Shown here piece after piece: positions 6,241-35,739 of a stretch of DNA of 64,000 bases. A program made the position numbers and the translations under genes. Within the stretch, counting starts at the first letter, position 1, and the number at the start of each line of letters is the position of its first letter. The stretch is from Takakia lepidozioides (Eukaryota > Plantae > Bryophyta). The DNA lies in the NCBI GenBank assembly GCA_030704615.1, contig CM060732.1, positions 81,220,001 to 81,284,000 of the forward strand, read 5' to 3'. Below the pieces are notes generated by a model that saw only the letters and a list, made by a program, of their open reading frames with translations, was not told where the DNA came from and did no database searches.

Positions 6241-6289
6241 TAATAGGTGATAAAAAATTAATTAATTAATTTTCCAAAAAAAACATTTG

Positions 6290-11154: not shown

Positions 11155-11850
11155 ATCTGTGGCAGAACTTGGAAGATTTGACAATGATGAGAATCTTATA
11201 GGCCTGCCGTGTGGCGACGGAGGGAAATGGAAAAGCATAAATGGCGGACGCACATGTTCGTCAATCTCCAAAACGCCTGCATATTATTCGCCTAAGGCAG
11301 AATGGAGACTAGATTCTAAAGATATAGTCGAACATAAAAAAGAACTGAACGGCGGCCATCTGCACAGAGATGTAACGAAGATGTGGTATGACACATCAAG
11401 TTATCTGCTCGGATAGTCTCCAATTGTATGAGGTGCTATCCACCACGATTGGTAATCAACACCCAGAGGCAGAACCAGCTGATGTGCCGGGTCCTTCATA
11501 CGTCCTTCAACTTCCATAGAACGAGACAGCGTAACAGATACAGTGAAGCAGTAGCAAGGAGTCCTACAGTAAGATAAACACAGGGATGCGTAGCAGTAGA
11601 ACAAGATCGGTTTTCATGTGTGGACATCGTCCGTCGAAGTATACCTGGCCTGGACTCGAATGTCAACTTGCTTCAGTATAAACAAATGCGTAACACCGCC
11701 CCCTCCACACCGGAGTCCAAGGAGAGTGCTGGCCACAATATTTTGTCTCTGGTCGTTTGCTATGGCCGGCTGGATATGAACATTAGCTTGAAAACTTTAT
11801 GAACCAGTAATTCTTCTGCCTGTCTGTGAGAGGACTACCATGAACCATCT
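11155..11850 (+). pseudogene. Possible degraded F-box gene remnant upstream of GGCT2
   Basis: LWQNLEDL..MRIL*...KWKSI (F-box-like) and a later SSVEVY motif, with many stops. Confidence 0.25.
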
Positions 11851-13059
11851 GGAAGTACTTCCTCGCCAGAATGCAGTAAGGGTAACGTGATCCAAAGAGA
11901 CGACTACCTCCCTCTCTCTCTCTCTTGTCGCTAACAAAAATTAACGTGCATGGGAGGAAGGATGCACTGCTTCTTCTGTGAGTGAGACAAGTTTACTGCA
12001 TACAAGATTCTGTCTTTGAGATGCGAGACTGCTCGCAAGCCTGGTTGATATATCCGAGATGGATTGGCCCCGAAAGTAGGCATTTAAAGGAGGCGAGACT
12101 TGCCTACTGCGGCCATCGCACGGACAGCTTCGGACACAAATCCAACTCAACTTAGGCCCTACCCAGACTGCAAAACTGACCTGCATTATTTAACTTTTCC
12201 TTCAGAGAAAACATGATAAGTCTGTGGACAACGTCCCTGCAGCTCATGCCCCTCTCACTTACGTATCACTAAGCGCCTACCGAACCGGCCCCACAGGTCC
12301 AGCAGCATTGAACATCAAACTAAACTCCAGTCAGCTCCACTGATGCACCGCAAATGCTCTCAAAATCTCTCCACACAAAAATCTCCAGAACCCGTAAATT
12401 ATACTGAACTCGCAGCCCTCTCTCAGCAATGCCTCCGACCTCCGATCCTCCAACAAACAAAACTGTCGCTATGCAACACGGATCCACAACGGTTCTGCAA
12501 CCCGCCGAGCTTTTCAAAGGAGACGACCATCGCAGCAACGCGCATCTCTCAGAGAATCTCTACATCCATCCCTCATCCAACCCACATTCATCACTTGGCT
12601 GTCAGCGAACAATCTGCGTGTGGTCCGAAGTTACTAAAGTCGGTAAGCTACTAACCGTCTCACTAATCCACGGCCAACCGCAAAAGCGTCCCGGTACAGT
12701 GCGACCGACTTTGCTTAGTACTTCGGTTTGACTAACCGAGAAGATTACCGCGATGTAACTCCGAAGTTACCAGCCATAAAGTAAACGGTGACCGGCCGTA
12801 TATCTGAAAGACGGCACGACCTCTTCCACCGTCGGATGCAGCATCAGCCGCATGCGGGCCGTTCGTACATCCCATCCCAGCAAAAGAAGCGGCCAGTACG
12901 TAAAAAGCGGGACGCAGTGGGGAGATACAGTGAACCTGGTCACAAGGGGGGGGAGTTTATTATGGTTCTTTAAACGCCACATGCGGCAAGTTGACAAATA
13001 GATACCGCGGTTTTGGTACTATTTCCGTATTATTTAAATTAAATTAAACTTTTTGCACC

Positions 13060-13800
13060 GGATGATAAGCTATCGCTTTACGCGGAAAGGATGGATGAAA
13101 CTTACCCACAATGGATGGGTGGATGGGATTGGCGATGGATGTCCCTTCTTCTGCGGCCACCCATTTTTTTAAATAATTTATTTTAGGAGTTATTAATTTA
13201 TTTATGTTATTTAAGCAGCCGGGGGTCGAGTAACGGTCCGACAAGTGAGTGTCCGTCCAGCTTCGTTGCCCGTGTCTCGTGACTGCGTCATTTCTGGGCT
13301 GTCTTTCCCGTCCTTTCCGTCCATCCATCCGTCAACGTCACGTCGCAACCACAGCTGGTTATCGCCAAACAGACGTAACGAACAGAGACGTCTCGCGCCC
13401 ACTTCGTCCGTCCACATCCCCGACTGCGCGGTTTCCGTCGACCGCGGGGCTGGTCTGCAAGAAGCAGGGCAGGCGCAGCGGACAGCGGTGCCATGTGGTG
13501 AGCGCGTGTCTGCATCCGGTCGTGATAACGACTAGGAGCAGACAGCGCCGGTGGACGGAGGGGAATAGAATCCAGGCACGCGTCGCACCCACCTCGTACT
13601 GTAGCGTTCATACACATCCAGGATACGTTCATCGGTGTTCATCCAACCGATGCAGCAGAAGTAGCAGAGTTCGACACGTGCCGAACTTTCATTGAGTGAC
13701 GGAGATTGCAGGGTGGGGCGTTTCATTGGTCGGGCTTTACGGCGTTGTACATTGACTGGATGATAACGCCTTGGTGGTTGAGAATGTCTGTTCATCCTTG
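13060..13800. repeat. GC-rich interspersed repeat with GGATG/CATCC subrepeats
   Basis: Many ggatgg/ttcatcc motifs. Similar motif usage, including ccaccaagg(c/t)gtt, occurs at 51895-52445. Confidence 0.4.
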
Positions 13801-16544: not shown

Positions 16545-17309
16545 CACTCCCTGACGTGGCGCCCGATTGGCCCACGTGTCACTCAGCCTCCCTCTACTGG
16601 AAGATTGTTGCGGAAGGTGGTGCTGCACCGGAAGGTTTTACACGTGGCGGGTTCATAGGCCCTCAGTTCCGGAAGATAGACCTTCCCTTCCATGAAACGG
16701 AATGTGTAGGGTAAAGAAGCGTACGTCCTGCTTTTAATCTAGCAATCTGATTGGCTGCGAATTATCCCATATCGATTGCCCATATTTAGCACCCTGTATA
16801 GTATATAAATGGGGGTGAGCTGCAATGGTTTTGGGTGGGCTTAGGGGGTTCTGCGCATGGCGGATGGTCACATCCTGGCAGGGCATACCCTCAGGGGAGG
16901 TGTCGTCTGAATACAAAGGGTGAAACACCAAAGGCGTTATGTATAGGGAAAGGGCTGCTGATGAAGCCCTTCTAGCGTTTAAGAATGAGTAAACCAGGGG
17001 CTCTAGCCTGAGTAGGGCCAAGTCCTCGACCCGCCTAAGAAACCAACCTGCCCCTGCTTACCCGACGAGTGTGTGCGAGGTGGTGGGCTCGCTGGCCCAG
17101 AGAGGCTCCGGCATACTACCAGATCTATCCCCCATTGGGGGATAGAAGGTGGGGATCGCTCCACACCTTCTGTTCCCTCCTCATGCTCCCCACCTTTAGG
17201 ACCATGTTCCCAAACAATTTCCAATTTCGCTCCCCTGTTCCTGCTCCTCAATCCATGCTCCCCATTGGGTCAAGGAGCAAGCGGGGATCAAGGATAGGAG
17301 CGAGCCACG

Positions 17310-17562
17310 TAGGGAATTCCAAATAGGCCTTGATGTGAAATGCATCGCAATTCACTTGATCACCCCCCTAAAAGTGCACAATCCAATTGAATTGCAAAAT
17401 GACAATTCAATCAAATTGTCAACTCGCAATTCAATTGAATTGCAAACTATAAATTGTTACGTATTTTTATATATAACATTATATATTTATATATATATAT
17501 ATATATATATATACGAGAGTATAAGCTGAATATATATGTTGCCCGTCTATTCCTGCTGCCCG
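17310..17562 (+). repeat. Left TIR of the 17.2-kb element
   Basis: TAGGGAATTCCAAATAGGCCTTGATGTGAAATGCATCGCAATTCACTTGATCACCCC... includes the palindrome GCAATTCAATTGAATTGC and a (TA)n tract, and ends ctattcctgctgcccg. Confidence 0.92.
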
Positions 17563-17739
17563 TCCATCCTTTGCCTGTGGTAAGGCCTGAGTCACGAGAT
17601 GAGTCGTGTAGCCTAAAGAAGAGAGAGGAGGCCTAAGGGGGAGCGAGAGCGAGAGAAGGGGAGAGAGGGAAAGCGAGAGAGAGACGAAGTGACAAAGTGC
17701 TTTTAGGGCAAAGGTGCCCCAAAAGTTGGAGGATCAAAT

Positions 17740-19440
17740 CTGTTGGAGGACGAGAAGTATCGAGAGAAGAATGCAACAACAAGAGAATTGTGGAGCGGTG
17801 GTGGCGTTGTGTACTTTGGCAGCCTTCTTGGATCACCAAATGACAAGATTTGTCCATGAGTAAGCACATTCTCATATTGGCATGAGTTCCCCCAATCATT
17901 GATAAACATATAATTTTAGCTAAAGTTGTACTTCGTGTGTACATGCAGGTGACTCATGAGCTTTGAGGAGAGAACTTTAGGGGTAGTAGAGTGGGTTACC
18001 AAACGCTCCTCAACACACACACTGAAAGAAAGAGCTTGATCACATGGTTTGTCTTCAACCTGCCCACACTGTGTACTGTGGTTTGCTAACACATTTTAGG
18101 ACAGAGTAGTTGTTGGTTTCAAAATACCTTTGGTTCATCTACTTGATAGCATATGTGAAATTTAGTGACCTAAGTCCTATGGGGAGTGTGTGAGTGGATG
18201 CAGTGATTACAGAATTAACAGCAAACAGCTACAACAAGGGCAAGGTCGAATGCATTGGCACTGGGGCTATTAAGCAGAGATAAGACAGATCTTATGAGCA
18301 TGGAAAACAACCATTTGGACGGTGACAAAGTAGTGGATGATTTAGTACTTTATGTGGAAGCAATGTTGAATGAGGGTGCCACAATGAAATCAATCGCCAT
18401 TGCCCTGTCTTTTGATGATGTACGACCGTTGAAAAGATTGCTATCAGAAGTCCAAGGGTCTCATTTCAAAGTTCATCATCAATTGAGTATAGATCGGTGA
18501 CATTGACATTGACAAAGGCAGAGTTTGTCAAGACGTACGTTAATGCAGAGATGGAGAAGTGGAGATTCATGGATCCTCTTCGTGCCAAAACGTGTGCTTT
18601 AGCAACCAAGCGCTACAAAAAAAACGAAAAGTGTGAGTGTCATTTGTCCAATATTTCATGCAATGTTTCTATTCAACATGCAAATTGGACTCTAAGACGT
18701 GTAATTTGTTTCCATGTTGTGTAGACAAGAAACTACACAATGACGACAATCCAAACACGGAGGATGAAGAAGGGACAAACGATGATGGAGGAGAGGAGGG
18801 AGAGGAGGAAGAAACAGAAGATGGTGAGGATGAGGAGGAAGAAACAGATGACGACGATGCAGATGAGACTGAAGTAACAAAAGGAGTGCAGTGAGCATGA
18901 TGATGATGAAGATGAAGGAATGTAGAACAAATCGAATCAGTATCTTTTTTTTTGGCTACCGTCACTTTGTAAGTATGGAGAAAATTCTAAGACTTGTTTG
19001 TATGTTTCTTCTTATTCTCTTTTTGACATTCTAGTTGCCTGAGAGCAGTGCCCAAATAATGGTACAAAGATACGGACTACACTACTCCATTGCAGCGAGG
19101 CTATGTCGCTATTGTCCTACCTAGAAGAATGTGGTTTGCAGGTTGTGTAGGCGCCGGATGGTTTTCCTGGCCTCAAGTATAGCTCCCAGGAACCTTTGCT
19201 AAAGGGGTGCATACGACATGAAAGTTGTAGGCCGAGGCTATGTACATATTTTGAGGCTGTTGATACAGTGACTGCTTTAGGATGAAGCATGTGAATGGGT
19301 ACATAATTGGGAGTCCAATTCACTTACTCTTTGGCCATGTTGGTGATCTGGTGCTTGTGTATTTGCAGGATTTTAAAGAGAAGTATGCAGACGTGATTGT
19401 GCCAAACCCACCAGAAGCCATTCAGCAGCTATGAAACAGG
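17740..19440 (+). pseudogene. Possible element-encoded accessory gene (HTH-like segment plus acidic tract), degraded, spliced
   Basis: ORF pieces ATMKSIAIALSFDDVRPLKRLLSE (HTH-like), AEFVKTYVNAEMEKW and a D/E-rich stretch at 18740-18920. Splice-like signals are present; no confident family. Confidence 0.35.
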
Positions 19441-19899
19441 CAGTCAATGCTTCAGGATGTGGCCGAGCTAGACCTTTTGTGACTGTGGTGGTTGGTTTTT
19501 TCTCCAATACACAGTGTCTTAAACCAGCTCTTATATCTATTTGACATGGAATTTCGGCTTAGGGGCATCAATTTAATCTGGTGCAATATTTTACTCACAC
19601 TGAGAACTTCATTTTTAGTAACCAGGTTAGATGCCTTTTTGTGATTTGTTATCTACTGGACAGGGTGTATTGCTCTATAGGTATGATCATGGCAAACAGG
19701 GGGTTCTTGTTAGAGACACAAAAACTCCAAAATGATGTGAATATGCACCAACAAATTAATGGCCTTAGTGGTTGCTGCTTGGCTGTATAGCTCCAAGGAT
19801 CTCCTGACGTCTACATGGAACTTTGCCTCGAGCAGAGGCTTGCAGAAGGAGTGGGGCTTCAATAATCAATTGATTGTCGTCCAGAAAACTTGTTTCTTG

Positions 19900-20360
19900 A
19901 AGGCAAACTGCTGGAAAGTGTCTCTACATCTGCGAAGTCCAACTAATGCAAATAATTCTACGGCCTTGCAACAAATGAAGTCATCCAAACACAGTCAGCT
20001 AAGGAGTTCACCCCCTCTTCCGAGTACGGGTATTGTGTCAACCTCCAGTTTTTCCCTGGAATGTCAAGAAAGCAGATCACATCATTCATGGTTGAAGGGA
20101 AAAATCATATCGTTCCCATACCCCCTCTGCATTCATACTCCCCCATCGAGTTTCCCTCAAAGTCGATGATGGAGAAAATTGGGTTTGGCATCGTCGTGAA
20201 CTCCTCAAAACCGAAACTGTGTCTTGTGGTGATGATCTGACACACTACCATCCTGACCTTCTCGAGGACACTGGCCCGGGTACTGGGCCGCACGTTGTAG
20301 TTGCGTGCAATAGCATACACGCGTCCATTACACTCAACCACCCTAGGAGCCTCCAAGTCT
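19900..20360 (-). pseudogene. Captured F-box/beta-propeller protein C-terminal fragment
   Basis: PRVVECNGRVYAIA...FEEFTTMP...YECRG resembles plant F-box-associated repeats. Stops follow. Confidence 0.45.
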
Positions 20361-20589
20361 GCAAGAAATGAGGTATCATGTTGCAGTTGGGCTGTGTGTT
20401 CGATAAAAAGAGTTTAATATATCAACTCTTAGACGTTGATACTCTTACAGTGGTATCATGTTTGGTATATGTACATAGCCATATATTGGCACAGTAAGGG
20501 CTTGGCAGTATGAAATTGGTTAGTGTCTCAAGGTGCAGATGAAGCTCACATGCAAATATATTCGGATTGTAAGCAACACCCACCAGTCA

Positions 20590-21164
20590 AACTCATCCTC
20601 AGAAGAGATTGAGACCCCAAAATTTCTCAGGGTTGTTGGTGCACATGCTTTTGTCAAGGGCTTGATATCATCATCGGTCAACTCAAAGTCAAAGACATCA
20701 AGGTTCTGCTTCAATCTCTCCATCTTGTCTGACTTAGGAATGATAATTGTCTTGCGCTCAATGCCCCAGCGCAGCGCAATTTGTGTCGGTGTCTTGTTGT
20801 ACTTTCAAGCCAATCCCTGTAGTGTATTTGTAGTGTGTGTGAGAGAGATAGGGAAGCGAGAGATAACGCCTTACATAGACTAGTGAACGGAATCACAACT
20901 GAAGTCAATAATTCATAAGGGAGCACTTACGGAAGATGCAGACCTGAAGAACAACGTCATCAAGACACGAAACGGTGCCAAACAATTCCGTGTTAGCAAC
21001 CCCACCACCCAATGGGGTGTGGGCAGTGACAGCTATCCCATGCTTATGGTAGAAATTCACCAATGATTCATGATGGAAGTAAGGATAGGTCCCGATTTGG
21101 TTGACCAGCTGGCTTAATCTTTGAATATGCAAGGCAGTCCTTGGTCAAAAAGATGTCGTAGTTA
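20590..21164 (-). pseudogene. Captured aldo-keto reductase (S6PDH/M6PR-like) 3' exons with intron
   Basis: VNQIGTYPYFHHESLVNFYHKHGIAVTAHTPLGG..NTELFGTVSCLDD | KYNKTPTQIALRWGIERKTIIIPKSDKMERLKQNLDVFDFELT. Intron 20943-20817 is retained. Frameshift and stop present; the N-terminal half is absent. Confidence 0.88.
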
Positions 21165-22739
21165 CTGCCAAACACATGCCAATTAGAAAGAAGAGAGCCC
21201 ATCCTTGCTCGCACAGGGTCCAAGAAAGATGATGCTGGCTTGCTGGTCTACAATTTCTATCAAACAATACATAGAAGAGAAAGGTGTAGAAAACTGCAGA
21301 GATGAGGATAAAATAGTACAAGAAGGAAAACTAGACCGGGAGAAAAGAGAGGAAGTGCAAGGATTCCCCTAGGCTCAGTCCCAAACATTACATCCAGAAC
21401 ATAATCAAAACAAGACCTTGTCAGTTCCTGAAGTTCGCATAGCATGGACTTACAATTGCATCTGTCTCGCCAACAATATGTCGCTCCGTTATATCTCCTC
21501 GATGCAAGGCCAGCAAGCACGAATCTGCATTGTGGGTTGAACTCTCACCTAAGGTTAAGTTGGCAAAATAAAAAGGGTGGAAATAGATGGAAATACAGAA
21601 CATAATTTTGGATGGGTGTTAGGGACAACTTAACACACCAAATTACCGTTATTATGGTTATTTTGAAGATGTTAGAAGGGGAATGGAGCCCTTTGAAAAA
21701 GTTAAGAGGCTAAAAAGATAACCACCATGAAGCCCATTATTGAAAGCGAACAATCGAAACACGCATAAGTTTAGGAGATTGCGCCATAATGACAGTAGCC
21801 AAAATTGAATTGAAATCATTTCATCGATGATACCATTGTTTCTCAATAACTCCAAGGAAGTCAGCAACTCACTTCCTAGTGATGGAAGCATAAGGAAGGA
21901 GACTTCTCTCGTGTTCTTTTCAGCGAGTGAAGCCAAGTGATAATTCTTGGTCCATGTCTGCTGAATTACAAAGACAGTGCACACACACCAACAAAGGCAT
22001 TTCAGGGAAGGTGTCTCACTAGCATAACTCGCCCTGAACTCATCGACAACCATACTGGGTGGCTTTCACTTCACACTGCACCTACAAAAGTAAGTCTCCC
22101 CGGGACTTCAATGCTTCTCTATGAATTTACCACTTCCCTCTGTTCCCCCCTTCAACTCATCATGATGTCAATTGCATCCCCTCTCTCTTCTCCCATACCA
22201 CAACCTCTCTCAATTTTCTATGTCAACGAGAGGGGAAAGAACGAAAGAGAAAGCAGAAGTTTGTTGCAACCACAGGAGTGCGACACAATGTAACACCTAG
22301 AGAACAATGAGCATGTCAAAGAAATCCAAACATTGCTTGGCGATGGAGTGCCTCATGCATGTAGAATGCTAGTCAATTTGTTCCTTGTACTTGAGGCCCA
22401 CTACCAGGGAATTTCTCCATACAATATCGTTTCTTACATGTCATAGTTACAGTATCTTCATTTTGTTGGCGCCCTCTGAAAAATGACAAGCATTTATGCT
22501 CACATGTATACACTTTCTCTGAAGTGGCCATATTGTATACCTCAAGTAAGCCAATCCAGGTGTTTTTTTCAGAAGTTTAAAGTTCAAGTAGGTTACTGAA
22601 GAATTATGCCAGCACACAATGGAAGACTGCTGACCGTGTGACACTTGAGCATTGGTCACAAAACCCTGCCAATTCCTCACAACGTGTAGGGAATTCCAAA
22701 AATTACCATTGTTAATGGATCTCAACTCACAAATGCACC

Positions 22740-22892
22740 AACCTCTATAGGTATACCAAATAGGATCACTACTACCTAATGATGATACCTCTACTAGCAT
22801 ATATAGCTAAGTTTCTTTGTAAATGAAGCGTTATACCTCTGCTGGTATACTAATCAGGGCTACTACCTCATGACAATACCTCCACCTAAATG
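22740..22892. repeat. Two units of the element-internal ~95-bp satellite
   Basis: atacctct..ggtatac.aa.cagggctactacctcatgac.atacctc, same unit as 27195-27900. Confidence 0.85.
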
Positions 22893-23942
22893 CCGTGAAG
22901 CTTTACAGAAATCATATGCAAGTGGGCCTCTCTCCCACCCTCTCCCCCAAGACTAAAACATATTAGAGCACTTCATACAGCGCATAAGAAAGTAAAATTA
23001 GCCAGTAAATATTTTATAGTAGAGTACTCCACTTACCATATTAAATATGCAGTATAGCAGCATTCCATTAATGGGTGCAAGAAGATACGGGACCGCAGCT
23101 ATACCTCATTGTCAAAATCCTCATCCATTGATGACGTCTGTGCAAAAGTCACGAACAGCTGGAAATGTAACAATCGACAACAAAAACGGATTCTCATCCT
23201 TGGGCCACAACTAGATGGCACCTCTCCAAAGCCAACACAAACAAAAGGGGGCCAGCAACACTTGCCCCAATGTTGCCCCTGTCTCTTTTCCTTCCTTGTT
23301 GAGCTCTCTTTTCAGTCAGGACAAACTTACAGAGACATACTCCCACTCTCCCCTCCCTTTGACACTATTACGTCTCTTTTTACTTCAATCCTTCTCAACA
23401 GATATAAACAAACATAATCAATGGAAGACAAGTTCCCTCCATCTCTCTATCCTCTTCCTTTGCATCTCTTCTTTTTCTTCAACCCCTTCTCATACTTTGT
23501 TGATTTGTTCGTTCATAAAATCTCATCCTTTCGCCACAAGGCACCCGTTGCACACACGCTTGTTCAACACTTGTCAATTCTCTAACACACGATTGGATCT
23601 AGCCGGACTCCATGGAATCTTCAGATTCAAACCCTCTATAATCTACCAAGACTTGCACTTGAACTCACACTCAAACTGACATTCCAACTTGCATTTAACC
23701 TCGCACTCAAACTCAAACTCGCACTCAAACTTTCACTTTCATTTGGACTTGCACTCGAATTCTCATATTTACCATAATTCACACCCTCACATATACTCAG
23801 CAAATTTGTAACACTTAACATTCAACCAGACGTTAGACTCACAGTACCACTCCAAGAGCACTTCAATTATCTATGATACCACAAATTCAACCCCTCTGTT
23901 TGAGCCATGACTCACACTCAAACAGCCCTTCACCTCCATATG

Positions 23943-26795
23943 TCATGCACGACCATGACTACTATCCATGGTAGAATAGTTAATCTTCGTCATCATCATT
24001 GAGGCATCCTTGTTTGGGGAAAGATATAGAACTTGAAAGCAAGTGTTTGCTTGAATGCATGGATAGTTGTGTCGATTGAGAAGTTGTATATTGATGTCTT
24101 TGCCGCCAAAGTACTCTAATCCAGTGATAAAAATAGCCAATCGAGACCTCTCAGCATAGGTCATTTGATCCACACAATCTCGAAACCAATTCTGTTGGAG
24201 GGGCAATATAGATACATCGAATCTGTACTTCCTCAAGAAATCACTTGCTTCAATTGCACAAGCGCCATTGAATATAACACGTATTGTATCAGGAGATATG
24301 CCTTTCAAACGGTCTTTCATTCGATCCTTCATGGTGGGTGCACATGGTGCTTGTTCCACAACCATGTAAAACCCCTCTTGCATTGCCTTCACAATCAAAT
24401 TGCGTCCATTGAAAAGATGACTCCAAACAATGGCTCCAATCTTGTGCTCCACTTCAGATTCCCAAATTTCTTCTGTCATATTGAAATCCGAGAATGTCCA
24501 AGCCAAGTCTTCATGCGTCTCATCCTCTTGTAGTCTTTGAATCAATTTCATTGCCTCCTCTCTTGATTTTCTAAGGCAATTTAAGATTGACCATTTTGTA
24601 GCCCAGCCCAGTCAAAAATCACGTTCTAAATCCTTTTTCATTTTGGACTCCACACCAACGGACATGTTTTTGGACCCGGGGACTTGGTCACAAAACATGA
24701 CCAAAGTTGCGAATGAAAAAGGTCTTGAGACTTCCAATTCGTTCGATGCGAGCATAAAGATCAAATGCCCTAGCATTTTGGCCTGCAATATACACAAACA
24801 AATAGTAAGAATCAACAATGATATCTAACATTCAAACACAACTGGGTGTATCTTCAAAAATAATTCATGCATGTCAATAAAACAAATGACTTTGCAATCC
24901 AAATCTCACCGCATCCAATTGAATGTCTATGCGTATGACCTCAGAATCCAATTTTGGATGCAACAACTTTCCTTGAAGATTGTCAGGATATTCAAATATG
25001 GAATTGTAGCTTTGTGAACCAACAACAAAATCATCAGTCTTTGCTAGTACAATTCAAGTTTGTCATAAAATACAAAAAGCACAAAAAACATCCCTAAGTA
25101 TGCAAAATGTGCATCAAAGCAAATGATTACAAATAATCTTAAGACATGAAAAAAGTTTATGTTTAGTGCTTACGAAAGAGGTGGACCAAAATTGCTTCCT
25201 GCAAGTATTTGTAAGCCATGCATCACGCAAATCATCTTCATCGATAGTCAATCTTTCTGCAATGCCGCTGGAATGAATAAATTCAACATTTGGTCTATAG
25301 CAAGCTCTTTGATGTTTGATCTCATTCCATTGAAGGTTGAAAGCTTGAAGCTCCTTCGTTTGGGTCACCTTGAAAAACAACACGGAAATTTCAACAACTT
25401 CGAAATGTCCAATTCTAAGTGAAAGCAAGCTTACAAAATTAAATACGATCATGACAGTGCATGAACTCACCGGAATCTTGGTAATACTTATGTTGGAAAA
25501 GCCCAACCATCTTTTGTAGGGCTTGAAAACAATTTCACTCATATAATACCAATCTCCAAGGCTGCTAGTCGGAATATTGCCACTTGATTGTTCCATCAAT
25601 CCAAACGAAGACACATCACTGTTTAATCCCACGGTGTGAAGGGTCGTAGAAGGCCTTACCCCATTTGAACCTAACACGCTTTGGTACTTGTGATGTACTA
25701 TCAGCTTCAATTTGAGATGTTGTCATACCATAAGGCCTTTGGACCCTTCGAACATCTTGGGGCACTTGAGTGAGATGAACATCTTGAACTTATGACGGGG
25801 CCATATGAGAATGAGGACAGAGATTGAGAATCTTCAATCTCCATAGGTTTGATTTGTACACTACCACATCGCCGTCCATGGGCATTGGACTTTGTTTCAT
25901 TCTCAACCTCTTTACACCTTCTATCCCTCTTCTTAGGTGGATTTCTTAGGAATTGTTGATAAGCAACAATTCCATCACTTGGGAATGTGCTTACATCAGG
26001 AACATATGACACCTCGCTGTTATCAGGGATATAAACAACAAATGTTGTTGCTGCCAATTGGCCCCATAGAGCCCCACGTTTTCGGATCAATGGCTCTAGA
26101 AAACATTTGTCTGTTGCTCTCCTGGTCCGTTTGAAACAACACTGTCATACGTGGTGTAGGTGTTTGACGATGAGGCTCAAGTTGTGCAAAGTGGGCAGCA
26201 ATCTGAAACTCCACTGTTCCAAGACAGAATGGCTCGGGATAGATTTGCCCACCCCACTGAAGGTTTGCTTTGAGAGAGACCAAAACAACTGGGTTGTCTG
26301 GAACCCAGTTGGAAATCAATGGCATCAAAGCCTCACGATAGGTTGACCACTCTGTTGACCTTGGAAGCATATGGATGTGCCGTTGAATATCTTTGGGAGG
26401 CACATTAGAAGATGCTTGAGGCTGTCTTCTTCGTTGTGTTCTCGACTCACAAATATTTTGAGGAACAGAAACATTCAAGTCATTGACAGTGTCAATTTGA
26501 GTACAAAGACTTGGTACATTTGCCATAGCTTGGACGCCATGACCTTGGCCTTGGGGTGGTGCTGGTACATTTAATCTTGAAGAAGATCCAAATCTGGGTG
26601 GATATGCAAAACGCTCACCCTCTTGTCGAATATGCCCTACAAATGCACTTATTTGACACGGGATTGTGGCAAGTTCGGTATTGAAGAATCCTCAGTGTTT
26701 TGTGATGCACAGTCAGGGTCAATATCCTGCAAGTGATGCGTCCAATCTTCATCTTGTTTGGACATTTCTATATCGTGCACGCCTTTGTGAACCTG
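23943..26795 (-). pseudogene. Transposon-borne HECT E3 ubiquitin ligase gene (spliced; premature stop and frameshift)
   Basis: N-lobe-like RPNVEFI..G....D....RDAWL and KMLGHLIF. C-lobe ERSRLAIFITG...CIQANTCFQVLYL retains the catalytic Cys. In-frame TGA at 24612-24614; frameshift near 26023-26090. Confidence 0.8.
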
Positions 26796-26859
26796 CCAAA
26801 AAAGTAAGAATTGAGATCCATTGAGATCTGTTCATTCCAAAGAAACTAAGTCAAAATTA

Positions 26860-27900
26860 GTCTATATGTAGGTAGAGGTATCGTCATGAGGTAGTTTCCC
26901 TGTTTGGTATACCTACAGAGGTATAGCGTTTGATTTACAAATAAATTTTGTTGTCCTTGAAAGCTAGTGAAATCTCACATATATTTTAGGGTTTATCCAA
27001 TGCCATGTTAAGGTTTAGAAACATCCACAACATTACGCAACTAGCAATAAGAAAGTGGGTAAGGTAACATGTGTTCACTAATTTGGGCATTCATATGGTC
27101 TTATGCGGATACGTCTGAACTTTTGCTATGTGGGAAGTCATTTTTCAGCTGCGACCAGGGGCATATAGACTGAATTATCTTAGGTTTCTTTGTCTTCCAG
27201 ACACTATATCTCTGTAGGTACACCAAACATGACTATTACCTCTTAACGATACCTCTACATGATATAGCATGATTTATCTTGAGTTTCTTTGTCTATCAGG
27301 CGTTATACCTCTGTAGGTATACTAAACAGAGCAACTACCTCATAACGATACCTCAACCTGCATATAGGCTGGTTTGACCAAGTTTCTTTGTAAATCAGGT
27401 GCTATACCTCTGGTGGTATACTAAACAGGGCTACTGTCTCATGATGATACCTCCACATAAATATAGATTAATTTGGCCAACTTTTCTTGTAAAATGAAGT
27501 ACTATACCTCTGTAGATATACCAAACAGGGCTACAACCTAATGACGATACCTCTACTAGTATATATAACTAAGTTTCTTTGTCAATCAAGTGTTACACCT
27601 TTGCCGGTATACTAATCAGGGCTACTACCTCATGACAATATCTCTACATAAATATACACTGATTTTGATATCAAATTTATTTGTAAATCAAACGCTATAC
27701 CTCTATAGGTATAGCAAACAGGGAAACTACCTCATGACGATACCCCTACCTATATATAGTCTAGTCTCTTTGGAATCAAGCGCTATACCTCTGTGAGTAT
27801 ACCAAACAGGGCTAGTACCCAATGACGATACCTCTACCTACATATAGACTAATTTACCAAAGCTAATTAAGTTCCGTTGTAATCAAGCGCTATACCGCTA
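26860..27900. repeat. Internal ~90-100-bp tandem satellite (about 8 units) plus one inverted unit
   Basis: Unit starts near 27203, 27303, 27402, 27502, 27593, 27695, 27783 and 27890. An inverted copy lies at 26860-26947. Confidence 0.9.
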
Positions 27901-28739
27901 CACTTGTGCAAATGGCCTCCATTTAATAGAGGTTGTCATGAAACTTGACTTGGGCATCAAAAAGTAGACTCCTAACCTATCATGCCAAGTGATACCATTC
28001 ATCATCATACCTATCATACCTATCATCATCATGCCAAGTCTAAGGTTGTTGACCACTTATGTGAGAAAAACAAATGTTACATGGAAGCATAAAAATTCTA
28101 CTTTGTGGTTGTACATGCTACATTAGTGTTCCAGAACCTGGAGAGATAGACCTCTCGGTGGCTATGGACCTTTGCAGCAGTTGGAGAAACCATGACTCCA
28201 ATCAACAAAACACAAGTTATCATATTTGAAACCCAAGCTACATGGCATATAAGAGACAAGGGTGCAGCTATTAGTCTTGGTTGAGTATTTGTGTCTCCAT
28301 GAGTGTATATTCAGAATTTTATTACTGTATGCAAAATTCTTAAATTATGAATAGAGGGTTCTTGAAAATGAGACAAGTTGGCCATCATTGTCCCATATGT
28401 GGGGCAGACAAAGATTGTTGGAGAGAAAAGGCGGCCTCGTGAGCCTCACGTTGTGCACTTCCCAATGAAACCCAACAACTTCATAGCCCTCCAGAGATTG
28501 TGCTTCCCAGGTCCTGCCCCCAAGTAGTCAGGTTGGGAGATGATAATGGTTTAGGGTGTATGGTTCAGTATGGACAATAGATATGATGAAGGGAAAAAAT
28601 GATTTTTATTAAACAGAAATCCTCAAAGTACATGACATAAAACAATTATTTTTTAACGTGATTGTCCTACTTGTTCACTTAATCACAATTACATTCAAGA
28701 GCTTGTGTAATTGAAAGTTGGAGAGCTTCCCTTCTTAAC

Positions 28740-31547
28740 ATGGTATTACCAATGAGGTCCAATTGGTCAAAATATTTATGTTCATGCGTTGCCAAACCAC
28801 AATACCGAGACTACATGTAGTAGTGGAGATGAAAACAAGAGATCGAATCCTTCCCAACCTTTCTAATTTCATAAGCTTGTGCACGGACACGAACCATGTC
28901 AGGAATGAGTTCAGCTCCTTTGGTGGGAAGGTCATGCAAACCACCTGCACATCGCCACCTTTGATTCCCACGAGGCCCCAAGTCTTGGTTACCAATGTGT
29001 TGGGGACTTCCCTAAATCGTGGGTCATCAACAAGGTGGCTGGTCCATCTACATAATCAAATACATCACCACATTAGAATAACATTCCAATGTAAATTGTA
29101 GCTTAACAATGAAAGTACAAACAAGAGAAAACCATGAGCTTACCCATGCAAACATTCATACTCGCGAAAGAAACGAGCAGAAACATGTGATCGACGATAT
29201 CGACCGTTTTCATTAATCGTGCGAACTTGATGTCCATTCCAAATCTTCACGTATTCATCAACAGCTTCTTGTACTATGGGCATATATACGTGAATAAAAG
29301 ATTCTCGTTGCCACGGATCGTCCATATCCAATAATCCATCATTGACCATTGCCTGGACGCAATTTTTGTAGTAGAACATTACCTTCTCCCATAGATGCCA
29401 CCAAAAGTGTTCAATCCTCTAATGTGGTGATCACACCACACAAAATATTAGAAATATGCACAACATCACACACTCAATGATTAATAGAGATGAACCGAAA
29501 AATATAAAGTTGATATGCAAGATAGAATTGTATAGAGCACTAACCTGATTGTGTGTGGAAGACCCAATCAAGTACGGATTGGGTGTTTCAGAACGTGTGG
29601 TTCAATGTGTTGTTTTATGAGAGTCTTTTGAAAATGGTTTTTTCTTTCTTGTTTCTTGCAACGTTCAATTTGTCATAAGCTGCACCACGAATTACACACA
29701 TGTTTTAGTTTGCCTACAATTTTGTGCGATATGTAATGCAAGCAAACGTCTTGCATGTGTATCTTCAAAGAACATTAAGATGCATGAGATAAAATACTTA
29801 CAGTCAATGTGCCATAGAGCCATAGGCATTGTACCGAGTCCTCCGAATTGCCTGTGCCCTTCTCCTACGCTCATAATGGTAGGGTGAGATGATTTTCAAA
29901 GCTTCCCCCACCTTCCTTCGAGGAATCTGCAAATTTGACCTCCTTAAGGCAGATTGCATTGTTCTCATTCCCCACTTTGTCCCATTCTCTTCAATAGGAA
30001 GTAACTATTGAATATTTTTACACAAGCGTCAGAAGGGTTAGTTTGAAATCGCAGCTGATTGGTGAACACATATACGATACAAATAAGAAATATGCAAAGA
30101 TAGAATAATACCTTAGTTTGCCTCATAGTAGGTTAGCAAGCTGCTTGTCACCTCTTTTCGCAACTTGCGGCGATGCACCTTCCAGTGATCCTTGCCATCC
30201 CCATAGATTCTCTTCAAACGTGCCAAGTCTTGTTTGTAACCCCTAATTGGTTTGCACTGAGCAAGTTTTTTCCTCACCCACTTACTAGTCGCATTCGCAC
30301 CCACGACATCATCCAAGGTCTTAGCTGATAAATCGCCCCTTCCCCATTTGCGAATCCCGAAGTGGTCGTACACATCTTCATCGAACAATATTGCCAACAA
30401 TGGTGCTCGCTTCTTCTTGCTCTCCATGGCCATAGAACCACCCTGTGCCATTTCCCACATTCGCTCCGTTTTCAATTTGAACCTGTAACGCGCCTTGTTG
30501 TCGTGTACCCTATTTCTCTTATCTGCATCCCCATAGATCTACATGTCCGTCCTATGGTAATTCTGCTTTCTCTTCTTCCCATCCGTAGGGCGACCTGGCT
30601 TACCTGGAAGGAGGCAAGGACCTCCACACTTCACCACAAGGTGGTTGTGGAAGTTATGCTTGTCCTTCTGACCCATGGAAGGTCCTTCGCCGCAGATCAA
30701 ACAAAACCAATGTCCATTCTCCCGTTTGTAGTGCACCTCCTCTTGTGCAAACGATCCATCTAAATAACATAGATAGTGGATGTGTGAAATTAGGCATACT
30801 AGGGTTTTAGAAATGGAGATTTCACCTACATAATGATACCTTTGTAAAGATATTTGTCTCTAGGCATCTATTATACTTTTGTGTTACCACTACACCTATC
30901 TTACACATAATGCTAATACCTCTGTACAGAAAAAGACACATTTTAATACCTCTGTGGAAGTAAAGACGTTGCATACAATCCAAGCAATAAAAGAATGAAA
31001 ATGTACTTGAAACTAGGAGTCCCCTAGGAGTCCCAAGAGTTGTAAGTAAGCATGAACTTACTTCCTCGTCCTCCTAACATAGATAGTGGATGTGTGAAAT
31101 TAGGCATACTAGGGTTTTAGAAATGGAGATTTCACCTACATAATGATACCTTTGTAAAGATATTTGTCTCTAGGCATCTATTATACTTTTGTGTTTACCA
31201 CTACACCTATCTTACACATAATGCTAATACCTCTGTACAGAAAAAGACACATTTTAATACCTCTGTGGAAGTAAAGACGTTGCATACAATCCAAGCAATA
31301 AAAGAATGAAAATGTACTTGAAACTAGGAGTCCCCTAGGAGTCCCAAGAGTTGTAAGTAAGCATGAACTTACTTCCTCGTCCTCCTGGCACTCCTCGCCC
31401 TCCTCCTGTTAGCGCCAGGTCTGTCGAGGTAATAGGAGGTGTTACGACGTCACTGTTTGCTACAACAGACACAACCAAAGATAAAGGGGCTTCATGACGT
31501 CTTGATTTCAATTTGATACGCTTCCCTGTTTTGTTGGATCTTCCCAT
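28740..31547 (-). pseudogene. IS3-like (IS3EU/integrase-core type) DDE transposase gene with introns, defective
   Basis: Exon 1 ATG 31547; exon 2 from 30760 with Zn-finger-like WFCLIC..H..H...C and KPGRP. Then WGMRTMQSALRRSNLQIPRRKVGEALKIISP..RRRRAQAIRRTRY..ALWHID|SYDKL and LIGSSTHNQ|RIEHFW..GLLDMDD...VYMPIVQEAVDEYVKIWNGH. Stops at 30539 and 30113; the region for the middle catalytic Asp appears deleted. Confidence 0.82.
30765..31385. repeat. Near-perfect 310-bp tandem duplication in transposase intron 1
   Basis: 30765-31074 vs 31075-31385 differ, by eye, only by one inserted T. Confidence 0.95.
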
Positions 31548-32339
31548 TTAGATACCTTCATGTCTCCTGAAAAAAACAATGTTGTTTGAAAAGCTCGGTG
31601 CTCCGAGCTCGTAGCACTGGATCTCTATTCCTGTCTCCACATAAAGACAATGTTGTTATAGGGCAGAGAACACACCCTGAAGTTGTCTATTGCTGCCTGC
31701 AGGCTCTTGAGATGTGGATCTCCTTTTTGCAGATTGGCTAGCAACCTAAGCTTGCAGAGACAATAAACACTCAACATAAACACTGACCATCAACCTAAGC
31801 TTAATTCCAAGCATTACAGACCAGCCATGACACAAATACTAACCCCTTCACTCCAATTGTTCTTCATGTGTTTTGTTCACAGATTAGTTTACCAGTTAGG
31901 GCCTTCTAAAGAATACAAGCACTGCTGCAAACACAGTTGTTGGCTATCAAAGTGGTTCAAGTTACACCATTCCAATGCAAATGACACTAGAAACAGATCA
32001 ATTGAATGAAATGACACTGACAGGTTGAGTCCGAGTACAAGTGCTCAAAAATTAAGAATGGTTGCTCGATTCAAGCAACTTAGTTTTTGTAAGCTGTATA
32101 ACTAGCATGAATGAGGTTCACTTGTAGAGTCAGGCACATTTAGCACGAGAAAAATGAAGCCAACCAGCTCCCTAAACTCCTTTCCTAACATTGTTACCCA
32201 TGTTGAGCACCACATCTGAAATAAGACTGTCTCAAATTGATTCAGATATGTACCTTGTCACGAGTGGTGCATGTAGCTTCCCTGTACCCACAGTAAACCC
32301 TAATTATTGTTACAATTTGCTCAAAGGGTTTAGTTAGAA

Positions 32340-32880
32340 ATCAGTGGACTCCAGCCATATTGTCCCACACTCCCTTTTGCATCCTGGATACCCCCACATT
32401 TGGCATACATGTCCACAAGGGCATTTTCAAGAATGATACTTGGTACAATCCCAACTTTCCTGATGTTAGCATAGACCTCTTTGTCATTTTCTAGGGCTGC
32501 TACGCATTGTGAAGGCAACCAAATGTTACCTAGTTGGGTTTTTATCTCTTTCAACATCATTTGCTCATAGGTCTCCAAAGCCTCCATCCCACAACCATGT
32601 TGGGCATATCCTACAATCAGTGCGAACTCCATGACACCACATCTTGTTTAGCCATATTGTCAAAGACTCCCTTTGCATGTCAGCTTTCATATCAGCACAT
32701 GGACTTCTTTGCCCTTTTCCAGGGCTGCTAGGCTTGCATACGCATTGCAAAGGCAAACAAATGTTACTTGGTTGGGCTGTACCCCTTTCAGCATCATTTG
32801 CTCATAGGTCTCCAAGCCTTCATCCTACAACCATGCGGCATATCCTGCAATCATTGCACTCCATGATACCACATCTTGCG
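32340..32880 (-). pseudogene. Captured PLS-PPR fragment
   Basis: GYAQHGCGMEALETYEQMM...ENALVDMYAKCGGIQDA, with frameshifts. Confidence 0.85.
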
Positions 32881-33679
32881 GTAGAAGACCTTAGTTCAAA
32901 ACACAGGAGAAATGGAGACATACCCTTCGAGTTGGAATCATGCCGCTCGTAGCCCACCACCTTGCACACCTGCTGTCGTTGCAATGTCTGAACAGGCAAC
33001 CCCCTCTTATGGTTATTCTTTCCTAAAGTCCTCTCATAGGTAATGGCACCATAACACTGGTTGTTCACTGCAAGTACGAAGCCTTCTCATATCTTCAAAA
33101 CAACTCCGTATCTAGCTCAAGGATTTTAGAAAAGAGCTCAAAAGGTTCATAGCAAAAGAGTGGCCCTCACTTGCACCCGTCCCAAGAAAATTGTTTTCCT
33201 GAGGATGTGCGAGGTGACTGGCAAATGCTATAGCTATCCAAAATGAACCAATAAGTAGTCGGGTCCGAGGGAATACGACCAACCTAATTGGCTACCATTA
33301 TGTAAGGGAGTCAAAAGTGTAGACCACTTGAGCCAAAAATCACCTAAGTGTCTGTGCGGGAAGGGGTTGTCAAATTTACAACACAGCTGAAGCCAACATC
33401 ACTGGTTCCTTGGGAAGATATCACATAGAAGATACCTTAAAGTCTCTTCTTCCTAGAAGATGTGACAATAGCCATTGTTCTGCTATTTCTCCCTAGTTCA
33501 TGTAGTGCAAAGGCAGCAGCTCACTTGCCAGCATTGAACATTTAGGGTAAACCATTTGCATCCTCTTCTATACATGGCATGATGAAAAGCTTCTCATCAG
33601 AGCCCTCGAGAAATTTTGGAAACATTGGCTCGAAACTACAAAAACCTGAATTGCTTCGAGGAACAAAGCCTAGGCTCAC

Positions 33680-34200
33680 TTTGAGAATCCGCGTATTAAT
33701 CGACATCAGACTTGAGGGCGCTCAGCTGACCTTCCGACACAACTGTGATCATTGATAGTTATCAGAACTTTGGCCTGGAATGCAATTGCATATGCATTTG
33801 GGTTGCAAAAAACCTCAAAGAAAACACCATCATCTCCTGTTTGCCGGTACTCCATTGTGTCCCATCTCCGTGGCCTCGTGGCCTTCTCCTTCTCTTTAAA
33901 TGTCGTCAGGAGGCCGACGATGGCAGAGCTTAGACCCTTGGCTGCGTCTACTGAGAATAGCAGAGTGAGCGACGTCTCCCCGATGTGGAAGGTGATGGGG
34001 GGTTTCGCTGCGAGAATCAAGCAGATTCTTCCGATCAAAATTGCGGAAGGCCGAACACAATCCAAGCCTAAGACCAACTAAGAAAAACACAACTACTTTA
34101 CAGCCCACCGAAAACTTTGGATCAGCTCCACTGTCCCAGGTCCTCACTTCCCCGCTCACAAGTCTCTAGAAACAAAGAGAATCTGTCAATAAACACCATG
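33680..34200 (-). pseudogene. Captured intronless gene similar to a conserved cyanobacterial/plastid-type hypothetical protein
   Basis: FSVDAAKGLSSAI..LL...MEYRQTGDDGVFFEVFCNPNAYAIAFQAKVLITIND, then a frameshift to ..VSEGQLSALKSDV. This recalls the cyanobacterial motif MEY..TG.VFLEIFCNPN..P.PFAAKVL.T (from memory). It lies directly inside the right TIR. Confidence 0.55.
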
Positions 34201-34251
34201 GCTCCATTCGTAGTACAACAGTCGATTTATTTCCCCTGTCCCATCCCTGGC

Positions 34252-34525
34252 CGGGCAGCAGGAATAGTTGTATTTTCAGCTTATACTCTCGTATGTGTAT
34301 GTGTATATGATGAATATATATACATACATATACATTATATAAAAAATACGTAAGAATTTATAGTTTGCAATTCAATTCAAGTGAATTGCGAAATGACAAT
34401 TCAATTGAATTGCAAATTAGGGTTATTTTCAAGCTGGTTTTTTTGCAATTGAATTGCGTACTTTTAGTGGGGTGATCAAGTGAATTGCGATGCATTTCAC
34501 ATCAAGGCCTATTTGGAATTCCTTA
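34252..34525 (-). repeat. Right TIR of the 17.2-kb element
   Basis: Reverse complement of 17310-17562, ending GGCCTATTTGGAATTCCTTA before TSD GCCACG. Confidence 0.92.
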
Positions 34526-35739
34526 GCCACGTTCCACATGGTGAAGAGGGGAGCGGGGACCGGGAATAGGGGAGCGAGTCGCATTCCACATGGCGAGGAG
34601 GGGAGAAGGGACCGGGAAGAGGGGAACAAGGACAATGGACAGGGATAGGGGAGCGGGCCTAGGAACAAGGAGCGGACAGAGGAGCGGACATTGGGAACAG
34701 GAGGAGCGGAGCGAGGATCTCTTCTCATTGGAAATAGGGTGGGCCATCGCAGTCCCTGAAATGTACTAACAGTGCTTATCGATCTTGACAGGGCGCCCCG
34801 CCGGAACATCGCCGGTACGGCCATCCCCGGCTTGCGTGCCGACAAGTCTTCTCCGTGCATTATACATTTTTGTATTTCCCTTGTACTCTACTTGTGGCTG
34901 GCTAGTATTACGCTATATAATGAAACGACGAAGAGAACTCAGCCCAGTTCTTTATGCCTGACGTTATGGTCACGAGATGGTTTTTCTGCCATTTACAGGG
35001 AATTTCCCTGTAACCTTCATAATCTCCCTGACAGCTGGACATTTTACCCGCCGCGGCCCCTACCACCACCCGTGGAACCCTACTACTTTAAATGTAACTG
35101 CTAAACGATATGGGATAATAGCAAATTGGGAATAGTAAATCAAACCAAACTAAAGGATAATAGAAAGTTCAAAGACAAGAAGCTTTGTCACTGAATCATG
35201 ATCTGTTTCATCAAAATAGTTTGATATATGGTCTTGCAGATTGTGGTAACTGTGTACAAATTTCTAAACTACAAAGTAAATCTATTCAATTGTTGGAGTC
35301 TCTGTAAACTCAGAACTACTGGCATCTACATCTCTTTTATCATTCCAGGAGCAAGAGTCTTCTCTTTCAGAGTTGTGGCATCCTTCATCTTGATAACAGG
35401 ACTAACCGGAGTCAAAACATCCTTCAGAAGACTAGCTGCCATATTAGGATCCACAATCGTGAGCGTTATATTACTTATGAAACTGGTGGGGCTGACCGTA
35501 ACGACCAGCTCCTGGGGGAAGGCGGAGCCCGCCTTCCCGCCGCCAGCCTCTGCTAAATATCTTAGTCATGACTAAATCCATAGGGTTTCACCATTTTCCT
35601 ACTTTCCTCAAGGGCGTTACCCCTCTTTGCAGCGGATCCACTAACTTACCCCTAGCTAGGTGTTTAGCACCGTCTCCCGCCATAGCTCGTCCAGTGGCCC
35701 TTGGCTCTTCCTTGCAGCCTCGCAACACCCCTGCTTCAC

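Follow-up and report, generated by a model that had tools for sequence, protein, structure and literature searches.

Does a 17.2-kb structure in the genome of the moss Takakia lepidozioides, in which the remains of a transposase gene lie beside a gene for a HECT-type E3 ubiquitin ligase, represent a single transposon insertion, and if so, is the ligase gene a component of that transposon or a passenger in it? The structure occupies positions 17310-34525 of a stretch of 64,000 nucleotides (GenBank assembly GCA_030704615.1, contig CM060732.1, positions 81,220,001 to 81,284,000, forward strand), hereafter termed the window. A first-pass annotation, made from the letters alone, had described it as an IS3EU-like transposon. 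Our analysis makes it highly probable that these 17,216 bp are one IS3EU/GingerRoot insertion, a decayed copy of a two-gene (transposase plus HECT) moss family; a function for the HECT gene we only infer.

Element boundaries and target site

The following features delimit the element:

17304-17309: left copy of the target site duplication (TSD), GCCACG, identical to 34526-34531
17310-34525: whole element, 17,216 bp (17.2 kb), bounded by terminal inverted repeats (TIRs)
17310-17566, plus strand: left TIR, starting TAGGGAATTCC, with subterminal CAATTCAATTGAATTGC-like repeats inside
34248-34525, minus strand: right TIR, ending ...GGAATTCCTTA
34526-34531: right copy of the TSD, GCCACG, identical to 17304-17309

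The outermost 80 nt of the two arms (17310-17389 versus 34446-34525) are 94% complementary, while a gapped alignment of the complete arms (257 and 278 nt) contains 246 ungapped columns, 223 of which are identical. These values bear out the TIRs of ~260 bp, starting TAGGG and TAAGG, that had been reported. Furthermore, exactly two copies of a 54-nt terminal stretch (17313-17366) are present in the 64 kb of the window, one per arm, where no occurrence is expected. The element ends, TAGGG...CCTTA, are of the TA..TA type, and the terminal 20 nt of the left TIR fit the motif TAnGGnnTnCCAAAnnGGC.

Removal in silico of the element and one TSD copy rejoins the flanks into GAGCGAG, five nucleotides and TTCCACATGG. 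The sole intact match to this pattern in the window is found one repeat unit to the right, 45 bp away (34572-34593), and the insertion broke a local tandem unit precisely, in agreement with the earlier reading of the flanks. The rejoined site is equally compatible with a TSD of 6 bp and one of 8 bp, as had also been recognised. The 8-bp parse (AGCCACGT) was dropped in favour of 6 bp because of the TA..TA termini of the family and the perfect 6-bp TSDs of two related elements, L009 and L010, rather than on account of the rejoined site. These two elements, together with L008, derive from three HECT proteins encoded on long contigs of ENA assembly ERZ25073694, and they serve as the principal comparison below.

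The transposase and its superfamily

Three features of the window represent the transposase:

28697-30013, minus strand: remnant of a DDE transposase gene, recognised by Pfam rva_4, by reading of the sequence and by comparison with the cores of L008, L009 and L010
29048-29143, minus strand: transposase intron of 96 nt, GT..AG on this strand, removed by splicing in one contig of X7 (a probable RNA run, discussed below)
18339-18494, plus strand: homologue of an N-terminal helix-turn-helix-like transposase exon, on the opposite strand to the core

Positions 29143-29418 (minus strand) match the Pfam family rva_4 (PF24764, 'integrase core domain') with an E-value of 8e-12, and the closest atlas clusters to the transposase are likewise rva_4. 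Read across GT..AG introns, the gene yields ...ALWHID|SYDKL... and ...GSSTHNQ|RIEHFWWHLWEKV, the latter containing the RIEHFW motif. In the supplement of PMC10045372 the core of IS3EU-1_CGi is printed as 'VWHIDSYDKLKP ... GKSTHNQRIEWFW', and those of the Selaginella GingerRoots SL_GR-020 and SL_GR-005 as 'LWHMDSYDKLA ... GPSTHNQRIEHW' and '...GSSTHNVKIEAFWRHLYEKV', respectively. When compared at the level of motifs, the cores of the window copy and its sisters are the same as the IS3EU and SL_GR rows of that alignment, while LWHID-SYDKL, HG.IDG, VRSDFA.E and GSS.HNQRIE.FW are unlike its IS3, IS481 and IS481EU rows. The set of motifs taken to define the superfamily, LWH(I/M)D.(Y/H)(D/K)KL, HG.IDG, (V/I)R.D.G.E and (S/T).HNQRIE..W, is complete in the sister elements L008 and L010; L009 has N at the position of the second Asp.

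IS3EU and GingerRoot constitute one lineage with a bootstrap value of 99% (Kojima & Bao 2023, PMC10045372), and the same authors found TA..TA ends invariably in complete IS3EU families, with a TSD that is usually 6 bp. Because of its core motifs, Pfam family, termini and TSD, the Takakia element is, as judged by motifs, a member of IS3EU/GingerRoot. The identification of an IS3EU element with a 6-bp TSD, and of motifs that typify IS3-related eukaryotic integrase cores, was thus sound. In contrast, the belief that such elements had not been described in plants was wrong. GingerRoot was described in 2019 from the lycophyte Selaginella lepidophylla (Cerbin, Wai, VanBuren & Jiang, PMC6839031), with a 6-bp TSD, mostly TA..TA ends, TIRs of 100-150 bp and sizes of 3.9-12.9 kb, and with matches in 18 Bryopsida (moss) species; both lycophytes and bryophytes, mosses included, are covered by the published accounts (PMC6839031, PMC10045372), and the present host is itself a moss. 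Moreover, three annotated proteins of Ceratodon purpureus share 70-80% identity with the transposase core of the related elements. The element is a real but broken copy of a superfamily already known in mosses.

No MULE, hAT or PIF domain was found by Pfam. The N-terminal transposase pieces of the window copy, L009 and L010 likewise gave no Pfam match, and HHCC, GPY/F and chromodomain motifs were not specifically sought in them.

Decay of the window copy

Public contigs from the same organism, aligned on 23900-29899 (6,000 letters), reveal what the transposase remnant has lost relative to its sister copies: 8 nt at 29831, 63 nt at ~29666, 67 nt at 29624-29626 and 1 nt at 29600. The 8 extra letters that sister copies possess after 29831 correspond to a frameshift just 5' of LWHID in the window copy. 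Between 29802 and 29666 a spliced sister contig carries 76 letters, of which 13 nt are exon and 63 nt are absent from the window. Where the window has three letters (29624-29626), sister copies have 70, a segment that includes the second catalytic Asp, and they have one extra letter after 29600. In the window only ~110 nt separate YDKL from GSSTHNQ; the core of intact relatives reads WHID |.YDKLAMYGL.VHGCIDGASH...VRSDFA.EH...NPFLVGSSVHNQ | RIEHWW.

The N-terminal exon homologue at 18339-18494 matches L010 (5307-5615), L009 (3043-3318) and L008 (3643-3852) in tblastn searches, with E-values of 1e-4 to 2e-9. In these three elements the exon immediately precedes the core, in the same orientation, whereas the order in the window is N-terminal exon (forward), HECT (reverse) and core (reverse), all genes of the element being on the minus strand save this one exon. 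Inversion of a block comprising core and HECT would give such an order; a composite origin is the alternative, weighed below. Because of the transposase deletions, the inverted N-terminal exon and a frameshift in the HECT gene (see below), the window copy is dead: it is a decayed, non-autonomous derivative. The first-pass annotation of a spliced transposase with WHIDxYDKL and GSSTHNQRIE.FW motifs therefore holds for the motifs, which do lie across GT..AG introns, and fails as regards an intact gene, the region of the second Asp being lost, the frame shifted and the N-terminal exon inverted.

Directly downstream of the inverted N-terminal exon there is a highly acidic open reading frame (ORF) with a Glu/Asp run (18637-18891, plus strand), which may belong to the N-terminal end of the transposase or else represent a small third gene; L010 and L015 (a further related element, listed below) have a weak NAP-like ORF in the corresponding 5' region. 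As a separate observation, L009 (4119-4391) reads VRSNFAAE where its relatives have VRSDFA.E, and CIGGAS in place of CIDGAS. To judge from these residues, L009 may encode an inactive transposase, even though its TIRs, being 99% identical, give it a young appearance.

The HECT-type gene

23946-26691, minus strand: HECT-like multi-exon gene; last exon 23946-24611 (C-lobe), Cys codon 24039-24041, frameshift at ~26130-26145

The last exon matches the Pfam family HECT (PF00632) with an E-value of 1e-7 and a score of 32 bits, against a curated cut-off of 23.9. The Pfam check that had been proposed at the outset recovers both domains, rva_4 and HECT. An AlphaFold (AF2) model of the exon (222 aa) has a predicted local distance difference test score (pLDDT) of 75.6, and a Foldseek search of the PDB with this model returned HECT domains as all of its top 50 matches. 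VIA-align superposes model residues 115-220 on HECT C-lobes with a Z-score of 14.7 and a root-mean-square deviation (rmsd) of 1.9-2.0 Å over ~102 residues; a sequence search of the PDB with the exon gave no match. The Cys of the ..NTCF.. sequence (TCF motif) is kept in at least 90% of 13 family members and in all six element copies, and its motif and position indicate that it is the catalytic Cys. The C-lobe of the window copy has LSPNK versus LP(P/L)YK in relatives, and His at position -4, where most relatives have Tyr or Phe. A frame switch near 26130-26145 interrupts the window gene, and four homologues have a single open frame there. A HECT gene co-oriented with the transposase core, as first described, is hence confirmed, though in frameshifted form.

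Outside the C-lobe the gene is less readily classified. All exons were searched, translated and modelled singly, rather than as a joined spliced protein. The upstream exons are kept within the family and gave no Pfam match in an exon-by-exon search; they include a conserved block of ~130 aa in the N-terminal region, with a KRTKKRK-like basic patch resembling a nuclear localisation signal (NLS). Pfam detected no known domain in this block, a feature search of the ESM-Atlas gave no usable match, and an AlphaFold model from a 6-row alignment (mean pLDDT 53.6) was too poor for a fold search. The exons are nevertheless collinear with homologues in L002, L008-L010, L015 and L017.

A phmmer search with the 222-aa last exon against 1.84 billion representatives yielded 36 proteins at E <= 1e-3, all of them short ORF fragments and none a canonical full-length host HECT E3. 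No NCBI or UniRef names exist for the ten HECT relatives whose clusters were checked. The canonical enzymes (NEDD4, WWP1/2, SMURF, HUWE1, E6AP, UBR5 and HECTD3) share with the element HECT the C-lobe fold (Z ~14-15, rmsd ~2 Å, ~100 residues), the Cys in ..TCF.. ~32 residues from the C-terminus and, for most element relatives, the aromatic residue at -4. They differ from it in that the element protein is only ~20% identical to them, has an N-lobe that Pfam does not recognise and an N-terminal region without a known domain, and is encoded inside a transposon.

Pairing of HECT and transposase genes in related elements

Two sets of loci were compared. L008, L009 and L010 were seeded from HECT proteins; L013-L017 were seeded from transposase matches chosen regardless of HECT.

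L008: TIR-bounded element of 10.4 kb with both genes
L009: element of 12,730 bp; TIRs of 1,866 bp, 99% identical; ends TACAG..CCGTA; TSD TACCAT
L010: complete element of 8,669 bp; ends TATGG..CCCTA; TSD CAGGAG
L013: C. purpureus chromosome 2; TIR-bounded element of 3.7 kb, transposase only
L014: C. purpureus V chromosome CM026426.1; HECT at 5250-6326 (minus), transposase at 9714-11085 (plus)
L015: TIR-bounded element with both genes; TSD matches at 4 of 6 positions
L016: transposase only
L017: TIR-bounded element with both genes; no TSD

All three HECT-seeded loci have transposase exons upstream of HECT, in the same orientation and inside the TIRs. Among the transposase-seeded loci, a HECT gene was found within 10 kb in three of five, including the V chromosome of C. 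purpureus. At this last locus (L014) the HECT and transposase remnants are arranged head to head rather than co-oriented, the HECT pieces are unannotated, and no TIRs were found within 20 kb. The motif TAnGGnnTnCCAAAnnGGC, a 20-nt end starting with TA, is common to 14 of 14 ends of seven elements, and complete members of the moss lineage measure ~8.7-12.7 kb. For the distant HECT relatives P0025 and P0036 and the JGI contigs L002-L007, which are short, no transposase context was found. The notion of a transposase and E3 ligase module as a lineage trait, put forward from the window alone, is supported by the recurrence of the pairing in L008-L010, L014, L015 and L017; TIRs do pair around transposase and HECT genes, with perfect TSDs in L009 and L010.

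The L008 contig also displays an arrangement of its own, in which two GingerRoot-type elements (1-2660 and 2657-13097) stand head to tail. Only 6 bp (GGTATG) stand between the right end of the first of them (...GGCATTCCATA, ending at 2650) and the left end of the second, and the 6 bp after the second copy (CATACC) are the reverse complement of this spacer, not a direct repeat of it. Element ends that abut across so short a spacer are reminiscent of bacterial IS3-family elements, with their circle junctions and tandem dimers.

Copy number and probable transcription

Two DNA runs from the same organism contain 147 and 351 contigs with 85-99% identity to the 6-kb stretch 23900-29899, and both genes are represented, by pieces with 95-99% identity, in a 'plant metagenome' run of a different study. 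The family is multicopy in the same organism. In run X7, an 832-nt contig is spliced at 29802 and contains the core segments that are deleted in the window copy, while the joint 29047->29144 drops 96 nt (CT..AC on the plus strand) in X7 only. Because these spliced joints are not seen in the DNA runs, the evidence is good that an intact sister copy gives rise to spliced transposase mRNA.

Evolution of the HECT gene

The pairwise identities of transposase exons and HECT exons are correlated (Mantel r 0.86, p 0.006, with 4 of 720 permutations as high; n=6, five of the elements being from one assembly). Synonymous divergence (dS) is saturated between families, where non-synonymous divergence (dN) amounts to 0.39-0.63 for HECT and 0.1-0.35 for the transposase; dN/dS is accordingly not computable at this level and the conclusion is qualitative only. 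The closest pairs gave dN/dS ratios of 0.34 and 1.5. This pattern fits a history in which selection acted along the active lineage and copies decayed neutrally once inserted. The family was found in three moss sources, namely the window, ERZ25073694 and C. purpureus. Because of the conservation of fold and Cys, the shared context, the co-divergence and the values of dN under saturated dS, these sequence comparisons suggest that HECT is an old, selected component of the moss GingerRoot lineage rather than a recent host capture.

No paper combining HECT with IS3EU or GingerRoot was found; Repbase Reports lay outside the search, and an earlier mention there is possible. Neither the word 'HECT' nor the word 'ubiquitin' appears in the text of the GingerRoot paper (PMC6839031). 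The HECT accessory gene appears to be a new, undescribed part of these elements.

Captured fragments and other contents of the element

Four further features lie within the window copy:

20523-21144, minus strand: captured aldo/keto reductase fragment, two exons plus intron (Pfam PF00248)
26838-27855: array of ~100-bp repeats between both genes, with inverted relatives at 22741-22894
30116-31386, minus strand: region upstream of the transposase remnant, with ORFs that have no homologue in related elements
32333-32824, minus strand: captured pentatricopeptide repeat (PPR) gene fragment (Pfam PPR / PPR_2)

The reductase fragment matches PF00248 twice (E-value 2e-9, profile positions 236-288, and E-value 0.008, positions 158-198), and the PPR fragment is 62-87% identical to PPR-like repeats elsewhere in the window. 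Both fragments, recognised by Pfam, substantiate the proposal that the element also captures host genes; a host fragment that retains its intron, together with a degraded transposase, matches the description of gene-capturing (Pack-type) GingerRoots. The PPR-like arrays at 2764-3492 and 49900-51700, with units of 113-124 nt, are candidate relatives of the parent of the captured gene. Bins within 27300-27899 reach, in the DNA runs, a word depth several-fold that of the adjacent HECT gene, and the array at 26838-27855 is probably a high-copy repeat or a miniature inverted-repeat transposable element, present as a secondary insertion. In the region upstream of the transposase remnant, a tandem duplication of ~310 bp (30765-31075 / 31075-31386) is 100% identical, which suggests either a very recent origin or an artefact of assembly.

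Alternative readings

Were the boundaries wrong, the structure would be a composite of at least two partial, oppositely oriented elements that two TIRs enclose by chance. Such an origin would suit an N-terminal exon that is directed inward from the left end, against the direction of core and HECT, a region (30116-31386) that is without counterpart in relatives and carries the fresh 310-bp duplication, and a length of 17.2 kb that exceeds the 8.7-12.7 kb of those relatives. However, a 6-bp TSD without mismatch and a local repeat that is restored exactly imply that the present ends inserted together, and an internal inversion, whether after insertion or in the source copy, accounts for the gene order equally well; we consider a composite very improbable. 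Assignment to another superfamily (Ginger1, Ginger2/TDD or Polinton, or MULE, hAT, PIF or CACTA) would have in its favour that 6-bp TSDs are also listed for Ginger2/TDD and Polinton in the GingerRoot paper (PMC6839031), and that our placement was made without a formal phylogeny. Yet rva_4 is the sole Pfam match of the transposase, its core motifs agree with the IS3EU/GingerRoot rows and not with those of IS3, IS481 or IS481EU, the TA..TA termini are a stated hallmark of IS3EU, and MULE, hAT and PIF domains are absent, which renders such an assignment extremely unlikely.

A host E3 gene, or part of one, might also have been captured by a single GingerRoot lineage and carried passively, with no role. 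Capture is indeed frequent in these elements: 22 of 77 S. lepidophylla GingerRoots contain gene fragments, with transposase loss described (PMC6839031), and the window copy already has two (PPR and aldo/keto reductase). HECT is, moreover, missing from some relatives (L013 and L016), and one close pair has a dN/dS near 1. Nevertheless, among the 1.84 billion representatives searched there were only 36 relatives, all short, and none was a canonical host HECT E3; the collinearity of the gene extends to its non-HECT N-terminal block, across elements whose DNA is otherwise only ~66% alike or unalignable; its distances correlate with those of the transposase; the protein is kept while synonymous sites are saturated between families; and it was found in three different moss sources. 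Ordinary cargo is on this evidence very unlikely, and one insertion from a two-gene IS3EU/GingerRoot family is the reading that we prefer. Several observations weigh against this preferred reading. Two of the five transposase-seeded loci (L013 and L016) have no HECT, which implies that the ligase is not needed in cis by every copy. A perfect 6-bp TSD was sought at L008b, L013, L015 and L017 and found at none of them (there is no TSD at L017, L008b and L013), leaving four of the seven TIR-bounded elements without one. In-frame stops occur in the exon translations of several related copies, the exons being unjoined. Pfam recognises only the C-lobe in the relatives, covering profile positions ~172-299 of 306 (the window match starts at 136), and gives no match for their N-lobe, the E2-binding part. 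The sampling of the co-divergence test, largely from one assembly, is a further such point. Finally, run X7 (33 million letters) is only guessed to be RNA, from intron-less joints absent from the DNA runs, and no X7 contig covers the HECT gene, a weak negative from one small probable RNA run.

Proposed mechanism and known systems

DDE integrase-type transposases bind the ends of their element and join them to a staggered target. Complete members of the moss family possess two co-oriented, intron-containing genes between TIRs sharing TAnGGnnTnCCAAAnnGGC: the first predicted to encode a DDE integrase-type transposase, composed of the N-terminal helix-turn-helix-like exon and the rva_4 core, and the second a putative, highly divergent HECT-type E3 ligase with an N-terminal region lacking a known domain. 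The transposase would bind the conserved ends and join them to a target cut with a 6-bp stagger, generating the 6-bp TSD, and the window copy could be moved only in trans, by transposase from intact sister copies. To judge from its sequence, the HECT protein may be a thioester-forming ubiquitin (or ubiquitin-like) ligase that is kept for its benefit to the element. Of its conceivable roles, we would rank highest, by analogy, the modification or degradation of a host silencing or chromatin factor, followed by turnover or disassembly of the transposase-DNA complex and then by nuclear or chromatin targeting, the protein having an NLS-like patch. That bryophyte GingerRoot/IS3EU elements ancestrally encode a functional HECT E3 of their own, as a counter-defence or transposition factor and as the first HECT borne by a DNA transposon, is a tentative proposition that we regard as possible but doubtful.

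Among plant DNA transposons, a gene other than the transposase, connected with protein modification or silencing, is kept for example by the MULEs with a ULP1 protease (Kaonashi) and by the VANDAL elements with VANC. These belong to the Mutator superfamily, and their products are a deSUMOylase-like protease and an anti-silencing DNA-binding protein; we know of no HECT ligase among them. Within the superfamily considered here, the moss family shares with GingerRoot/IS3EU the core motifs, TA..TA ends, 6-bp TSD, TIRs of at least 100 bp and sizes of 4-13 kb (PMC6839031, PMC10045372), and with GingerRoot in particular the capture of host fragments at the DNA level, often with transposase loss, and the presence in bryophytes (PMC6839031). 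The window copy differs in its larger size (17.2 kb) and longer TIRs (~260 bp), and no second gene of HECT type is mentioned in those papers. Fungal IS3EU families, which have a 6-bp TSD and TAYGG..CCRTA ends, carry TET/JBP dioxygenase and alpha-kinase genes (Kojima 2025, PMC12730594), accessory enzymes that are proposed to aid escape from host silencing. They resemble the moss family in belonging to the same superfamily and in having a conserved enzymatic gene beside the transposase (PMC12730594), but the enzymes are a dioxygenase and a kinase rather than a HECT ligase, the hosts belong to a different kingdom, and the TET/JBP genes move between superfamilies, whereas the moss HECT was seen here only beside rva_4 transposases. 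If the HECT gene is a functional second gene, we propose the fungal TET/JBP genes, viral E3s and F-box suppressors as its analogues.

Other features of the window

The remainder of the window contains further recognisable sequences. A Ty3/Gypsy-type long terminal repeat retrotransposon interior (56866-61456, plus strand) has ORFs of 468, 358 and 734 aa with protease, reverse transcriptase, RNase H and integrase-like parts, and is followed by a repeat array with a 10-bp period (61576-61852). An ORF of 283 aa (54436-55287, plus strand) resembles, by eye, a fragment of a non-LTR retrotransposon reverse transcriptase. A host exon of DUF1279/FAM210-like type lies at 4818-5477 (minus strand), its best named matches being from Ceratodon purpureus (66%) and Sphagnum (59-62%), with angiosperms behind them (~50%), which places the host among the mosses. 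An Rfam search of the whole window gave no match.

Significance

The window locus itself matters less than its family, being a dead, rearranged copy. GingerRoot/IS3EU elements have been little studied, and in plants only the DDE motif has been characterised so far. The HECT family is currently invisible to annotation pipelines, with no named NCBI or UniRef proteins among the clusters checked. The family is testable: mosses contain copies that look intact, together with probable transcripts of the transposase, and two of their genera, Physcomitrium and Ceratodon, are tractable. A second gene, here conserved, evolving in step with the transposase and long subject to purifying selection, would change the annotation of autonomous members. 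If true, the ubiquitin system would join fungal DNA demethylation, the SUMO proteases of MULEs and VANC anti-silencing among the few host pathways for which DNA transposons bring enzymes of their own.

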